A stretch of DNA of 63,238 bases, filler included, from Octopus bimaculoides (taxonomy: Eukaryota), in the NCBI RefSeq assembly GCF_001194135.2. It is 6 parts of 6 records of this genome, joined end to end, with 100 filler letters (N's around TTAATTAATTAA, not from the genome) between each part and the next. Parts side by side here need not be neighbours in the genome. Positions count along the whole stretch, not along the records: positions 10,059 to 36,190 come from NC_069008.1; 5 more parts are not named here. One strand, written 5' to 3'. The position numbers and the translations under genes were made by a program. Of the stretch, positions 10,341-35,264 are shown in pieces; within the stretch, counting starts at the first letter, position 1; each line of letters opens with the position of its first letter. The notes beneath the pieces are model-generated. The model was given only the letters and a program-made list of their open reading frames with translations, did no database searches and was not told where the DNA came from.

Positions 10341-10461
10341 CTCTCTCTATATATATATATGTGTGTGTGTGTGGTTGTGTAGATGGAGTTTAGTAATATC
10401 TTAGCTTCACAGGTGATTTCCTGATGTAAATTTTAATAGATTAAAAAGTTCCTTTGTTCAG

Positions 10462-10560
10462 GTAAATGTTTATTTTTTTAATTTATCTCTATGGAAATGT
10501 TGAATCTGTATTTTTTAAGTAGTCTCTATATCTTACACTGTCATCTTTTTATTCTTTCAG
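10462..10560 (+). other. 99-nt intron in the 5' UTR of ZF gene 1 (homologues 16763-17066 and 26246-26344; acceptor only at 32774)
   Basis: CAG|GTAAAT donor and TTCTTTCAG| acceptor conserved between paralogues; length 99 nt in copies 1 and 4, and in copy 2 after removing its insertion. Confidence 0.7.
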
Positions 10561-10716
10561 AATATCAGATGACAGTGGTATAAACCTAGATTCATTTTCG
10601 TTTGAAACTTGGATTAATTCACTAAAGAGTTTTGGCACAAAGGTAACACTGGCAGAAGATTATTGAAGCAAAAAACAAGAAAAAGATCATATTTTGTGAT
10701 TTTTCGAAGAAAAGTA

Positions 10717-12222
10717 ATGGAAAAGAGTGAAACACTAAAGGAACTGATTTTTCCAGAAGATAAAGAAAAAGGGAGTCGAAAATTGTCACATGACTGTGAT
10801 GTCTGTAAAAAGTCATTCTCTCAAAAGTGTTACTTGACACTACACCAACGTATTCATAGAAAGGGGAAGCCATTTCACTGTGACATCTGTGGTAAATCAT
10901 TCTCTCGAAAAAGTAGCTTGACTACACACAAACCTACTCATACAGGAGAGAAGACTTATGACTGTGAAGTCTGTGGTACATCATTCTCTCAGCAGAGTTC
11001 TTTAGATTCTCACAAGCGTCTCCATACAGGGGAGAAGCCATTTCACTGTGACAACTGTGGTAAATCATTCTCTCATAGTAATAATTTGACTACACACAAA
11101 CGTATTCATACCGGAGAGAAGCCTCATCGCTGTGCTGTCTGTTTTACGTCATTCTCTCAGCGAAGTGGCCTTTATTCGCATATGCGTTTCCATACAGGGG
11201 AGAAACCATTTCACTGTGACATCTGTGGTAAATCATTCTTTCAAAAATGTGACTTGACTAGACACAAGCGTATTCACACGGGAGAGAAGCCTTATCACTG
11301 TGATGTCTGCAGTATGTCATTCTCTGACCGAAGTGCTTTGAGTTATCACATACGTGTTCATACAGGGAAGAAGCCATTTCGCTGTGACATTTGTGGTAAA
11401 TCATTCTCTGTAAGTGGTACATTGACTAGACACATACGTATTCATACTGGAGAGAAGCCATATCACTGTGAGGTCTGTGGTACATCATTCTCTCAGCGAA
11501 GTGCCTTAAAATCTCACAAACGTGTTCATACAGGAGAGAAGCCATTCCACTGTGAATTTTGTGGTAAATCATTCTCTAAAAACATTAGCTTGACTACACA
11601 CAAACGTATTCATACCGGAGAGAAGCCTTATCACTGTGACGTTTGTTTTACATCATTCTCTCATCGAAGTGCTTTTAATTTGCATATGCGTTTCCATACA
11701 GGGGAGAAGCCATTTCACTGTGAAATCTGTGGTAAATCATTCTTTCAGAAAGGTAGCTTGACTACACACAAACGTATTCATACAGGAGACAAGCCTTATC
11801 ACTGTGATGTCTGTAGTATGTTATTCTCTGACCGAAGTGCTTTAAATTATCACATACATGTTCATACAGGGAAGAAGCCATTTCACTGTGACATTTGTGG
11901 TAAATCATTCTCTGGAAGTGGTACATTGACTACACACATACGTATTCATACTGGAGAGAAGCCATATCACTGTGAAGTCTGTGGTAAATCATTCTCTCAG
12001 CGAAGTACCTTAAAATCTCACAAACGTGTTCATACAGGGGAGAAGCCATTCCACTGTGAATTCTGTGGTAAATCATTCTCTCAAAGTAACACCTTGACTA
12101 AACACAAATGTATTAATACCGGAGAGAAACTCCATCCTTCTGTCTGTGGTTGGCCATTCACTCAACATAGCAAAGTAACTTCTCCCAAACATGATCATAA
12201 GGGGAATAAGCAATCTCACTGA
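10717..12222 (+). CDS. C2H2 zinc-finger protein ZF1, 501 aa (15 intact fingers, one lacking the last His, one degenerate C-terminal finger)
   Basis: CxxC-x12-HxxxH repeats with TGEKPY/F linkers; the first in-frame ATG (MEKSE) matches the start of the paralogues, whereas the ORF-track start at 10663 is TTG. Confidence 0.92.
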
Positions 12223-12589
12223 TATTTGTGGTAAATCATTCTCCCTAAGTGGTGACCTAACCCTTTACTATGTACTTGATTCTCTCGAATGTGATGTTTA
12301 TTCACATTGTTTTCAATTCGTCATGCATTAACTCACAGCTTTCAAGCGTTGGTGATGTGATTGTCTATTTAGAGAATGACATTGTAGGGAAAGTGTAAGA
12401 GGCAGTGTCTAGCTTGTTTGAACATAAAATAGGTAGAATATTAGATCAAATATGAGTGGTTTAAATGCTGAATGGTTAACACTAGAAGTACCAACATTTC
12501 TTCTTACAAAAACCATCACAGCCATTTTTGACTGTCATTGAAAATTTATACTTGAATACAATTTATTTTAAATATCAGCAAATAGAGTG

Positions 12590-12595
12590 AATAAA
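12590..12595 (+). terminator. Putative poly(A) signal AATAAA (homologues 19202-19207, 21819-21824, 28234-28239; deleted in copy 5)
   Basis: Conserved context GTGAATAAAGGATTT followed by a U-rich stretch in four paralogous 3' UTRs. Confidence 0.55.
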
Positions 12596-32012: not shown

Positions 32013-32120
32013 AGGGTTTAGGGTTAGGATTAGGTTTACGGTTAGGGTTTGGGTTTTAGAGTTTGCGTTAGGGAATTCCGTCCCTAACCGGAACCCTGAC
32101 ACTAAAACCTTAACCCTAAC
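32013..32120. repeat. Degenerate head-to-head telomere-like repeats (TTAGGG)n-spacer-(CCCTAA)n
   Basis: TTAGGG at 32068-32073, 8-nt spacer AATTCCGT, CCCTAA at 32082-32087; arms roughly complementary. Confidence 0.7.
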
Positions 32121-32371
32121 ACCGTAGTGAAGATCGTGCGGGTGTTACAGAAAAGGCAGATATTTAGGAACTCGTACCGAAAGATCGGCGATCTATTTCC
32201 ACCCCGTTTCTGAGTTTGTTTCCTTGTAACTTCCCGGAAATTGGCAATATTTTTCAGGAAATTTTTCTACAAATACATTCCAGATAACGTAGATTACGTT
32301 GACGGGGGAATCGGTTGTGAAATTCTAAAAAAATATATTAAAAAATTATTCATGCGTGATTTAAGGGCTAT

Positions 32372-32707
32372 TTAGCTGTTATAAGAACATTTCACACACC
32401 TTCTGATATTGCTGCACCTCTTATGTGTCCATAGCTTACGCTGAGTACATCTTATGGAATTTCTACCTGTGCCATTTCTACAGATCAAGCAGGGCCATCT
32501 ATCTGAAGAGATTTGTGATTTGTCTGCTTTCCTATTTATTAAGACTTTGGTTTTTACTAGCTTAACTCTAAGGCCCTTCAGTTCTAGACCTTGCTTCCAC
32601 ACCTGAAATTTCTCTAGTTCTGGTAGTGATTCAGCTATAAAAACAAATTCATCAGTGTAGAGGAGCTCCCAGGGGCAGTCTATCTTAAATTCCTCTGTTA
32701 TTGCTTG
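32372..32707 (-). mobile_element. RTE-clade reverse transcriptase fragment replacing exon 2 of ZF5
   Basis: Minus translation QAITEEFKIDCPWELLYTDE (YADD motif) ...WKQGLELKGLRVKLVKTKVL..WPCLICRNG; joins the ZF intron at TGGAAATG. Confidence 0.8.
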
Positions 32708-33133
32708 GAAATGTTGAATCTGTATTTTCTAAGTAGCCTCTATATCTTACACTGTTGTTTCTTTATTATTTCAGAATATCAGATGACATTGGAATAACTG
32801 AAGATACATTCTCATTATTTATCTTCTTTTAAAGACCAAAATGAAAATATTGTACAGAGCAGATATAGAAGATTGTTTCTATAAGTCTATGGTAGAATTC
32901 CTCTGATATATTTACTCTGAAATGTGTTATTAGCAAACTTTGTGGACATCACTGGCTGGAGTGTCTACAAGATGAGTCTGGTTGCAAATTAAACTTGGAT
33001 AAATTTACTAAAGAGTTTTGGGACAAAGGTAGTCTGAGACAGAAACACGATAGCAGAAATATTTGTAAACAAAAACTATATAAACAAGAAAAAAGAAAAA
33101 ACATAAAGAAGTTGTGATTTTAGAAGAAAAATA

Positions 33134-34390
33134 ATGGAAAAAAATGAAAAACTAAAGGAACTAATTTTTCCTGATGATAAAAAAAAGGAGACACCAAAAT
33201 TGTTACATGACTGTGATGTCTGTAAGAAGTCCTTCTCGCAAAAGGGTAACTTGAATAAGCACAAACGTATTCATACAGGGGAGAAGCCATTTCACTGTGA
33301 TATCTGTGGTAAATCATTTTCTGTAAGTAGTTACTTAATTAGTCACAGACATATTCATACAGGAGAGAAGCCGTATCATTGTGGTGTCTGTGGTAAATCA
33401 TTCTCTTTAACTAGTAACTTAACTAAACACAAGCGTATTCATACAGGGGAGAAGCCATTTCACTGTGACATCTGTGGTAAATCATTCTCTGAAAGTGGTA
33501 AATTGACTAACCACAAACGTATTCATACTGGAGAGAAGCCATTTCACTGTAATGTCTGTGGTACATCATTCTCTGACCGAAGTGCTTTAAATTCTCACAA
33601 ACGTGTTCATACAGGAGAGAAGCCATATCAGTGTAACATCTGTAGTAAATCATTCTCTCAAAGTAGTGCTTTAACTTCTCACAAACGTATTCACACGGGA
33701 GAGACACCATATTCCTGTAATATTTGTGGTAAATCATTTTCTGACAACAGTGCTTTAACTTCTCATAAACGTATTCATACAGGAGAGAAGCCATATCACT
33801 GCAATATCTGTAACAAATCTTTCTCTGTCAGTAGTACTCTAACTAATCACAAACGTATTCATACAGGAGAGACACCATATTATTGTGATATCTGTGGTAA
33901 ATCATTCTCTCAGAGTGGCAACTTAGCTTCTCACAAACGTTTCCATACAGGAGAGAAGCCATATCACTGTGATATCTGTGGTAAATCATTCTCCGTGAGT
34001 TGTAACTTAGCTGAACACAAATATATCCATACTGGAGAGAAGCCATATCATTGTGATATCTGTGGTAAATCATTCTCTCATAGTAGTAACTTTGGTAAAC
34101 ACAAACTTATTCATACAGGAGAAATGCCATATTCTTGTGATATCTGTGACAAATCATTCTCTCAAAGTAGTGACTTAACTAGACACAGACGATTTCATAC
34201 AGGAGAGAAGCCATATCGCTGTGATATCTGTGGTAAATTGTTCTCCAGAAGTAGTTACTTGACTACACACAAACGTATTCATACTGGAGAGAAGCCATAT
34301 CCTTGTGATATCTGTGGTAGGTCATTCACTCAGCGTAACAACTTAACTTCTCACAAACGTGTTCATACAGGGGAGAAGCGATACCGCTGA
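33134..34390 (+). CDS. C2H2 zinc-finger protein ZF5, 418 aa (14 intact fingers)
   Basis: 26-aa leader plus 14x28 aa, canonical linkers. Confidence 0.93.
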
Positions 34391-35264
34391 TATTTGTGAT
34401 AAATCATTGTCTGTAAGTGGTTACTTAACCCTTTACCATGAAGATTATTCCCTCAGATGTTTGTTGTTTATAGTTTCAGCTTAGAGCTGCGGCCATGCTG
34501 ATGCACCGCCGATGTTTATTTATTCACATTATTTTCTGTTTGTCATCCATTAATTCACAGCTTTCAAATTTTGATGATGTGATTGTGTATTTTCAGAATG
34601 ACATTGTCGGGTAGGTGTAAGAGGCTGAGTCTGGCTAGTTTGAACATAAAATAGGTAGAATATTTGTGCTAGATGTGGCTGGTTTAAATGCTAAAGGGTT
34701 CACTAAATGTGTATCTATTCAGATAGATGTGTGACTATCAATGTGACCATTCATAAGAACAATAAGCATTTTGACCTCCTCCTAAATTGGTGATAGTGTT
34801 GTGGGCTTACTCCATGGCAATAATGAAGCTATTTATCAGAGAATTGCTGTAATTGTCGGAGTTTCTCCATGACAAAATTAAGGGACACTCTCTGCAACTG
34901 TATATAGATATTCATACAGAAATGGAGAAAGAACAGTGTGATAACAGCCTCCCAACTCTATAGTTTTTCTCACCACATCTCATGTAACTTACCTGTGACA
35001 TTTTTTCGTTTGTTTGTAATAAAAGCAATTTTTTCCAGATTTTGAATTTGTTTTGCATGAATTTTGTTAAAACCAATAGGTGTGGCTGTGTGGTAAGAAG
35101 CTTAATTCCCAGCTACATGGTTCTGGGTTCAGTCCCACTGCATGGCACCTTGAGCAAGTCTTTTCTATTATAACCCTGTGCTGACCAAATCCCTGTGAGT
35201 GGATTTGGAAGATGGAAACTGAAAGAAGCTCATTGTTTATATATATATAAATTGTTATCATCAC

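Follow-up and report, generated by a model that had tools for sequence, protein, structure and literature searches.

A tandem array of zinc finger genes in Octopus bimaculoides

The window analysed here is a composite stretch of 63,238 nucleotides (filler included) from Octopus bimaculoides, in which the piece at positions 10059-36190, with a G+C content of 34-41%, comes from ~5.807-5.833 Mb of chromosome CM046628.1 (GCA_001194135.2). An open reading frame (ORF) scan of this piece revealed, on the + strand, five head-to-tail C2H2 poly-zinc-finger (ZNF) paralogues, named ZF1-ZF5, four of which are intact and one of which, ZF3, is dead. Each intact coding sequence (CDS) starts with a short N-terminal leader and continues into the finger array (lengths in amino acids, aa).

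10717-12222, + strand: ZF1 CDS, 501 aa; 24-aa leader, 15 canonical fingers and 2 degenerate C-terminal units
17415-18836, + strand: ZF2 CDS, 473 aa; leader, 14 canonical fingers and 2 degenerate units
~20448-21500, + strand: ZF3 pseudogene, 11 finger units
26945-27865, + strand: ZF4 CDS, 306 aa; leader and 10 fingers
33134-34390, + strand: ZF5 CDS, 418 aa; leader and 14 canonical fingers

The NCBI annotation of CM046628.1 contains single-exon CDSs of 501, 473, 306 and 418 aa that are exactly the four intact ORFs; they begin at the leader ATG, and the leader and all fingers share one coding exon. A tandem array of five paralogues, each with a single finger exon, had been proposed in an earlier note made from the sequence alone. 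The array is real, with five C2H2 ORFs on the + strand and NCBI models that agree for four of them, and the single finger exon is borne out by both the ORFs and the annotated CDSs. The array also extends past the window: a 621-aa member with ~20 fingers is located 7.4 kb upstream, and an inverted member with stop codons (locus L003, 18691-19745, - strand) is found downstream of ZF5, beyond a ~5-kb run of N (L003, 12853-18085). Both outside members carry a leader, an upstream block and a 3' flank of the same kind as those of ZF1-ZF5, and the members seen amount to at least six in tandem and one inverted. Since the N run separates ZF5 from the inverted member, the switch of orientation and the true distance of this member are uncertain. 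An assembly artefact or haplotig duplication was ruled out, because the copies differ by 10-25% and carry private transposable element (TE) insertions with target-site duplications.

Large, clustered and lineage-specific C2H2 expansions are established in octopuses (Albertin et al. 2022, PMC9068888; Holzinger et al. 2025, PMC12513265), as the earlier note had stated, and the octopus C2H2 expansion of Albertin 2015 is cited here as summarised in PMC12988792. Their expression is reported to be mainly neural and embryonic (PMC12513265, PMC9068888, PMC12988792), and they are reported to coincide roughly with a burst of TEs ~25 million years ago (PMC9068888, PMC12513265, PMC12988792). The array described here is of this known kind and is already annotated by NCBI. 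With a probability of about 0.78, we consider the piece to be one section of an O. bimaculoides cluster of C2H2 poly-zinc-finger genes that is specific to the lineage, for which the structure and history set out below are, taken as a whole, the best explanation.

Fingers and N-terminal leader of the proteins

The five proteins were searched against Pfam at E<=1, the best 25 families being listed per protein. Only C2H2-type models were matched, zf-C2H2 and zf-H2C2_2 with E values from 1e-38 to 1e-128, and neither KRAB (PF01352) nor SCAN (PF02023), BTB (PF00651) or ZAD (PF07776) was among the families so listed. Likewise, tblastn with the pre-finger regions of ~120 vertebrate ZNFs (mostly KRAB- or SCAN-bearing) gave nothing credible or consistent outside the finger arrays. 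Each gene encodes 10-15 canonical units of 28 aa, in which C, C, F and the first H are invariant and which are followed by the linker T-G-E-K-P in ~90% of cases; such tandem C-X2-C-X12-H-X3-H units with TGEKP-like linkers characterise the Krüppel-type C2H2 poly-zinc-finger proteins. The finger numbers reported before (17, 16, ~11, 10 and 14) hold if degenerate units are counted, the canonical units being only 15 in ZF1 and 14 in ZF2, and the recognition helices quoted along with them are exact and belong to an internal six-finger block duplication in ZF1. There is no folded effector domain in these proteins, in which 10-17 Krüppel-type fingers, joined by TGEKP linkers, come straight after the leader.

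The leader is 24 aa long ahead of finger 1, or 26 aa if the HD of finger 1 is counted, and reads M-E-K-[SN]-E-[KT]-L-K-[ED]-x-x-F-P-[ED]-D followed by a variable Lys/Glu-rich tail in all four intact proteins. The 26-aa N terminus free of KRAB, SCAN, BTB and ZAD that had been noticed from the sequence is therefore a shared feature of the intact genes. M1, E2, K3, L7, K8, F12, P13, K22 and L23 are invariant; the first 13 residues form the conserved part, and the second half varies freely. The core M1, E2, K3, L7, K8, F12 and P13 is kept in seven paralogues and in three Octopus species, and with a pairwise omega (the ratio of non-synonymous to synonymous divergence, dN/dS) of 0.1-1.0 the constraint on the leader is moderate. 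When modelled with finger 1 by AlphaFold2 (four sequences only), the leader received a predicted local distance difference test score (pLDDT) below 50 and no secondary structure, which is weak evidence that it may be disordered.

An exhaustive HMMER search of 1.84 billion representative proteins with the leader profile returned four true matches, all from Octopus; in that search the matches came only from O. bimaculoides, from O. vulgaris and, as an XP_ record, from a third Octopus assembly, GCA_006345805.1, which we take to be O. sinensis. Hence the array shows what is expected of an octopus-specific expansion: an octopus genome, a tandem cluster, and leader relatives found only in Octopus. 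Word-index searches with the leader and finger 1 yielded no matches, which reflects a limit of the tool, since HMMER did find the four Octopus leader proteins. In a homology search with the whole ZF5 protein, generic vertebrate poly-ZNFs with 45-60% identity crowded the results, and the search was set aside as uninformative on taxon or family.

The only leader-bearing relatives detected in O. vulgaris (locus L004, 10001-10655) and in GCA_006345805.1 (locus L005, 248-909) are solitary and truncated, with 192 and 58 codons to the first stop, respectively. No other finger array was found within 10 kb of the O. vulgaris copy; around the copy in the third assembly, the region examined comprised ~250 bp on the upstream side and ~10 kb on the downstream side. 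It may be that the array exists in O. bimaculoides alone, or that its orthologues have escaped annotation.

The ZF3 pseudogene and its annotated model

ZF3 is a pseudogene: its start codon has changed from ATG to AAG, 10 bp have been deleted upstream of the start codon, its 11 finger units are spread over three frames, which amounts to two frameshifts, and several of its zinc ligands are broken. The earlier count of five paralogues stands, with the correction that ZF3 is not intact. One of the four leader matches, the annotated O. bimaculoides protein XP_052833708.1 ('zinc finger protein 728-like', 167 aa), is identical to part of ZF3, and its gene model maps to the window as follows.

19282-24078: XP_052833708.1 gene call, with exon 1 from 19282 and CDS pieces at 20019-20111, 20451-20729 and 23989-24075

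This model is a chimera, in which unique upstream exons are joined to part of the ZF3 finger exon. Its acceptor AG at 20449-20450 arises from the ATG-to-AAG mutation of the old start codon. We had considered the model as possible support for a splice acceptor 5' of the ATG in the intact genes; because the mutated start codon itself creates the AG, it gives no such support and was dropped.

The duplication unit and the history of the array

A self-comparison with the finger arrays masked revealed that the flanks and the distal intergenic DNA are collinear between units at 75-86% identity. Because even the distal intergenic DNA is collinear, the repeat unit is the whole of ~6.3 kb, comprising a promoter-like block, one coding exon, a 3' flank of ~370 nt with an AATAAA, a short interspersed nuclear element (SINE) and a distal spacer. 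The elements of the unit outside the coding exons and upstream blocks are as follows.

12223-12595, + strand: ZF1 3' flank, probably a 3' untranslated region (UTR), with a relic finger right after the stop codon and AATAAA at 12590-12595
13820-15021, + strand: unit 1, distal intergenic DNA to which 24128-25847 in unit 3 and 30208-31930 in unit 4 are collinear
18837-19207, + strand: ZF2 3' flank, with the conserved AATAAA at 19202-19207
27866-28239, + strand: ZF4 3' flank, with the conserved AATAAA at 28234-28239

A relic finger follows every stop codon, and the AATAAA ~368 nt past the stop is conserved in five copies, so the shared 3' flank described in the earlier note is real. The same note had taken the genes to be duplicated as promoter-to-3'-flank cassettes; the upstream and 3' flanks are indeed shared, whereas the segment copied is the entire ~6.3-kb unit, intergenic DNA included. 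Only the spacing between ZF2 and ZF3 is short, the ZF2 unit measuring only ~3.1 kb, and this shortening removed the 5' part of the upstream block of ZF3.

Finger-by-finger comparison gave a clear orthology, with 88-100% nucleotide identity, and places ZF1 and ZF2 in one subfamily and ZF3, ZF4 and ZF5 in another. Both ZF1 (F5-F10 and F11-F16) and ZF2 contain an in-register duplication of a six-finger block, and F7-F9 of ZF4 are recent internal copies. Together with the ZF3 pseudogene, the broken inverted member downstream and the degenerate fingers, these gains and losses of finger blocks make up the birth-and-death pattern that had been suggested. In addition, finger 7 of ZF1 (11290-11385) and finger 5 of ZF2 (17820-17915) share 96 nt of perfect identity in a register that is otherwise ~11% divergent, and this run may be a short gene-conversion tract.

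Selection on the fingers

Selection was assessed on 23 non-overlapping closest finger pairs (27 with ZF3), with Nei-Gojobori counts summed per position class (CI, confidence interval).

Contact positions -1, 2, 3 and 6: omega 1.32 without ZF3 (bootstrap CI 0.79-2.11), 0.94 with ZF3 (CI 0.62-1.34)
All other positions: omega 0.31 without ZF3, 0.28 with ZF3 (CI over the two sets, 0.21-0.44)
Zinc ligands and hydrophobic core: omega 0.09 without ZF3, 0.06 with ZF3

The contact residues evolve ~3-4 times faster than the finger scaffold (contact versus other positions, Fisher p = 0.0016 without ZF3 and 0.04 with it), and seven separate pair sets, with synonymous divergence (dS) of 0.13-0.33, agree on this. 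The proposal that replacement change is concentrated in the recognition helix is accordingly upheld, omega being 0.94-1.32 at contact positions versus 0.28-0.31 elsewhere. Of the two observations that the earlier note named as refuting its view, the first, a lack of excess non-synonymous change at helix positions, was not borne out, as the contrast between contact and other positions is significant; an omega above 1, and with it an arms race, is unproven. The excess of contact omega over 1 is not significant (p = 0.056 at best in a binomial test, CI 0.6-2.1), and the selection data fit relaxed constraint as well as an arms race.

A conserved block upstream of the coding exons

Ahead of the coding exons lies a block of ~320 bp that is conserved far better than the rest of the unit, being 92-100% identical among paralogues whose synonymous divergence is 0.13-0.33. 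Its copies are located as follows.

10495-10716, + strand: ZF1 block; TATA-like CTCTATATC at 10524, TTTCAG/AAT at 10555-10563, donor-like CACAAAG/GTAAC at 10636-10647 and acceptor-like GAAG at 10706-10709; ~175 bp of the exon-like part deleted
16975-17414, + strand: ZF2 block; TATA-like box at 17030-17046, TTTCAG/AATATCAG at 17061, exon-like stretch at 17067-17314, donor-like GT at 17315, 93 poorly conserved nt and acceptor-like GAAG at 17404-17407
20173-20447, + strand: ZF3 block, truncated at its 5' end, with the TATA-like and initiator-like part missing
26151-26574, + strand: ZF4 block, interrupted by assembly gap 2
32706-33133, + strand: ZF5 block; TATA-like box at 32738, TTTCAG/AAT at 32769, donor-like GT at 33029 and acceptor-like GAAG at 33123-33126

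The layout consists of the TATA-like CTCTATATC ~32 nt ahead of TCAG, an exon-like stretch, GTAAC, 67-98 poorly conserved nt and AG. With ZF1 set aside, the O. bimaculoides copies are 98.5-100% identical over the 66 nt that precede TTTCAG/AATATCAG and 92.5-97% identical over the following ~250 nt; versus the O. vulgaris paralogue at its solitary locus, the corresponding identities are 94-95.5% and 87-92%. The identities of the ZF1 block are lower (~88-89% and 79-86%), because ~175 bp of the block have been lost there. Directly past the donor-like AAAG/GTAAC the identity falls to 65-82%, until the acceptor-like GAAG ~7 nt before the ATG, and this boundary of conservation coincides with the splice-donor-like motif in every copy that retains the segment. 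By contrast, the 3' flanks are only 75-86% identical and the CDSs have diverged to the dS given above; ZF2 and ZF5, for example, have 96% identity over the block, as against 82% over the leader and 75% over the 3' flank. The poorly conserved stretch of the O. vulgaris copy contains a SINE of 400 bp, between the block and the ZNF start codon, as is expected for an intron. At least five short upstream ORFs, such as ATGACATTGGAATAA, are conserved in all copies that retain the segment, which is unexpected for a plain 5'UTR.

Judged by its conservation and motifs, the block would fit a core promoter followed by a non-coding first exon and a short intron. It may thus be a shared cis-regulatory module composed of a TATA-like box, a TCAG initiator-like site, a non-coding first exon of ~250 nt and an intron of ~70-100 nt, in which case the coding exon would start ~7 nt before the ATG. 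The shared leader exons of the earlier note hold good as an upstream block common to the copies; their exon status comes from conservation and splice-like motifs only. As to the array as a whole, a ~6.3-kb unit was copied head-to-tail, presumably by unequal crossing-over, after which the copies diverged through duplication and deletion of finger blocks and through replacements at the contact positions -1, 2, 3 and 6, some copies decaying while the scaffold stayed under purifying selection. The products would be sequence-specific DNA binders whose specificities have drifted or been driven apart, and their likeliest targets would be repeated sequences, a suggestion that draws on published genome-wide predictions for octopus ZNFs, not on the window.

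Several points weigh against this account. The start site, the 5'UTR exon and the intron are deduced from conservation and motifs only, and the exon-like block (17067-17314, 32775-33028 and 26345-26574) contains at least five upstream ATGs, which is odd for an efficiently translated mRNA. Nothing in the window indicates what the proteins bind, and the omega of the contact residues is statistically indistinguishable from 1. Finally, the near-identity of the upstream blocks could be due to recurrent local gene conversion between paralogues instead of constraint, as might be thought from the 96% identity of the ZF2 and ZF5 blocks next to far more divergent leaders and 3' flanks, and from the 96-nt identical run in the ZF1 and ZF2 coding sequences, which hints at conversion within the array. 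We nevertheless regard conversion as a rather doubtful source of this near-identity, for the block is also 87-95% identical to that of the O. vulgaris paralogue, which stands at a solitary locus without detectable 3' flank homology, and the boundary of conservation falls on a splice-donor-like motif in every copy that retains the segment.

Comparison with known zinc finger systems

In terms of membership, the genes fall outside the KRAB-, SCAN-, BTB- and ZAD-ZNF classes, and belong to the Krüppel-type poly-ZNFs and to the octopus-specific expansion. They resemble the C2H2 expansions of octopus and other coleoids in coming from the same species and genome, in forming multi-finger tandem clusters, in being restricted to octopus and in having no KRAB; what sets them apart is that the 24-aa leader, the upstream block and the unit structure are not described in the literature found, to which the leader and the upstream block appear to be new.

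The closest architectural analogue is the FiNZ-ZNF family, which is restricted to cyprinid fish and in which an acidic N-terminal sequence of 28 aa marks ZNFs that repress TEs (PMC10547256). Both groups have a short, charged, non-Pfam N-terminal motif (28 aa in FiNZ, 24 aa in octopus) before a long finger array, both are large, clustered and lineage-specific, and in both the contact residues are the most variable; the likeness is one of architecture alone, the motifs having been compared by description. FiNZ, on the other hand, is encoded on its own exon upstream of the finger exon, whereas the octopus leader and fingers share one exon, and experimental TE repression and an omega above 1 in some clades are on record for the FiNZ-ZNFs and are seen in neither respect for the octopus array. 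Being from octopus, with leader and fingers in one exon, the genes are not FiNZ-ZNFs.

With the KRAB-ZNF clusters of tetrapods, the array shares tandem birth-and-death, the placement of all fingers in one exon, in-register duplication and deletion of finger blocks, and faster replacement at positions -1, 2, 3 and 6. It differs from them in that no KRAB domain or KRAB exon was found in the octopus genes and no TRIM28-type link is known.

Possible functions of the array

What the cluster does can be read in three ways. The first is that its genes are ordinary lineage-specific transcription factors, not connected with TEs in any special way, which diversified to regulate host genes, for instance in embryos or in neural cell types. 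In line with this, the scaffold is under purifying selection with ORFs intact at a dS of 0.13-0.3, the strongly conserved shared regulatory block suggests regulated expression, and nervous tissue is the main site of expression of the expanded cephalopod C2H2 genes, which fall into different co-expression modules (PMC12513265). We hold this role to be possible, if short of probable, as the window offers nothing on targets, and a rapid turnover of copies with near-neutral contact residues is more typical of ZNF families directed at repeats (PMC10547256).

The second reading, which the earlier note favoured, is a convergent, KRAB-independent system of TE surveillance, in which new copies were selected to recognise new families of SINEs, long interspersed nuclear elements (LINEs) or miniature inverted-repeat transposable elements (MITEs), and the 24-aa leader recruits a silencing cofactor. 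The idea of TE targeting is not new, having been proposed and computationally tested for octopus ZNFs at genome scale by Wells et al. 2023, who found their predicted motifs enriched in TE consensus sequences (PMC10547256). Such a system would agree with that enrichment and with the FiNZ motif as a mark of TE-repressing zebrafish ZNFs (PMC10547256), as well as with the concentration of replacement at contact residues (omega ~1-1.3 in intact genes), the turnover of finger number with birth-and-death, the SINE and MITE-like elements in and around the units, and the leader core kept across paralogues and species. However, omega above 1 fell short of significance, and the leader, modelled at low confidence without secondary structure, is free to vary in its second half. 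The C2H2 genes expanded in cephalopods have a mainly neural expression (PMC12513265), the recognisable share of TEs at this locus, a lower bound, does not exceed the genome average (PMC12988792), and binding to TEs is only predicted, and that for octopus ZNFs at large. We therefore treat surveillance as a tentative idea and a somewhat unlikely one.

A role of the leader as effector or adaptor is speculation. In its most specific form, which we think unlikely, the core MEKSxKLK[ED]LxFP may act as a short linear motif, specific to octopus, by which a cofactor for silencing or another chromatin function is recruited, as a cephalopod counterpart of FiNZ or KRAB. Together with the co-duplicated and highly conserved promoter/5'UTR module, rich in upstream ORFs, it may define a co-regulated ZNF subfamily that tracks octopus SINEs and other TEs.

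Thirdly, the array could be mostly evolutionary debris, that is, neutrally duplicated and decaying copies with little or no present function. ZF3 is dead, the inverted downstream copy has stop codons, ZF1 and ZF2 carry degenerate fingers, ZF1 has lost most of its upstream block, and the relatives found in O. vulgaris and O. sinensis are truncated. Yet omega at non-contact positions is 0.3 (CI 0.21-0.44), four long ORFs have stayed open at a dS of up to 0.3, and synonymous sites change several times faster than the upstream block; debris is, in our judgement, an improbable description of the array.

The locus provides a clean, compact and already annotated worked case of tandem ZNF birth-and-death that leaves current views unchanged, its new details being only the short shared N-terminal motif and the unusually conserved co-duplicated upstream block. 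If the leader turned out to recruit an effector, it would help to explain the mode of action of the ~1,400-1,800 octopus ZNFs that have no KRAB (PMC12513265, PMC10547256), and the upstream block would provide one subfamily with a shared regulatory element open to testing.

Assembly gaps, repeats and other elements

Of the assembly gaps, gap 2 (26575-26908) interrupts the upstream block of ZF4. On the left of the gap, the alignment runs as far as position 17286 in ZF2 and 33002 in ZF5, and on the right it starts from 17388 and 33112, respectively, in the same order and orientation; as the flanks are collinear, ~100-110 bp of paralogous sequence are missing, including the donor-like site. The ATG of ZF4 lies 37 nt past the gap, and the CDS is intact. 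Gap 3 (30862-30871) falls within a foldback of ~420 bp private to unit 4, to either side of which the sequence is again collinear with units 1 and 3. Gap 1 (16078-16087) lies between genes, next to a dispersed repeat and a microsatellite; no ORF is affected, and no paralogous unit is collinear there.

The foldback around gap 3 is a MITE-like insertion (30742-31163) with inverted arms at 30754-30812 and 31080-31138 and an interstitial tract of telomere repeats, (TTAGGG)~12, at 30894-30967; at the same site, units 1 and 3 hold only 18-30 bp. Another foldback, of 300 bp at 29910-30209, is likewise a private insertion. In the ZF2 unit, a private insertion of 197 bp (16778-16975), with a 12-bp target-site duplication TTTATTTCTAGA and a near-perfect hairpin of 139 bp, is situated just upstream of the promoter-like block. 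These three private insertions postdate the duplication.

A SINE-like repeat is dispersed through the piece and is common to O. bimaculoides and O. vulgaris (L004, 9557-9975 and 1355-1525).

25140-25530, - strand: SINE-like repeat, full-length, ~390 bp, with an internal (TA)n(TG)n microsatellite
13133-13295, 16324-16636, 22375-22544, 35078-35252 and 35633-35874: partial copies of the SINE-like repeat

We presume this repeat to be of tRNA origin; because ARAGORN found no tRNA, the basis for that origin is A-box and B-box resemblance only. Sub-threshold Rfam matches to mir-297, mir-1277 and the like were rejected as artefacts on (TA)n/(TG)n microsatellites.

The TE content was estimated only from elements definable from the window and two unrelated Octopus loci. 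Recognisable SINE-like, MITE-like and foldback elements occupy at least 13.9% of the piece and 18% of its non-coding DNA, which is a lower bound, and the SINE-like family alone accounts for ~5-6% of the piece. Genome-wide, ~45% repeats and 4% SINEs have been reported (PMC12988792). Set against that ~45%, the lower bound of 13.9% does not place the locus above the genome average, and calling the region TE-dense, as had been done before, is not warranted.

A 118-aa ORF at 32375-32728 on the - strand, which we take to resemble a LINE ORF2 at its C-terminal tail, with a CxxC...HxxC finger after it, sits where the collinearity of units 4 and 5 ends; a Pfam search of the ten longest or most suggestive intergenic ORFs, this one included, detected no domain of a TE protein. 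The end of the ZF2 3' flank is occupied by an element of 223 bp (19315-19537) with terminal inverted repeats of 51 nt, half copies of which (12699-12879, 21934-22121, 28320-28410 and 34698-34823) are present at the homologous place in every other unit, where the alignments between units break.

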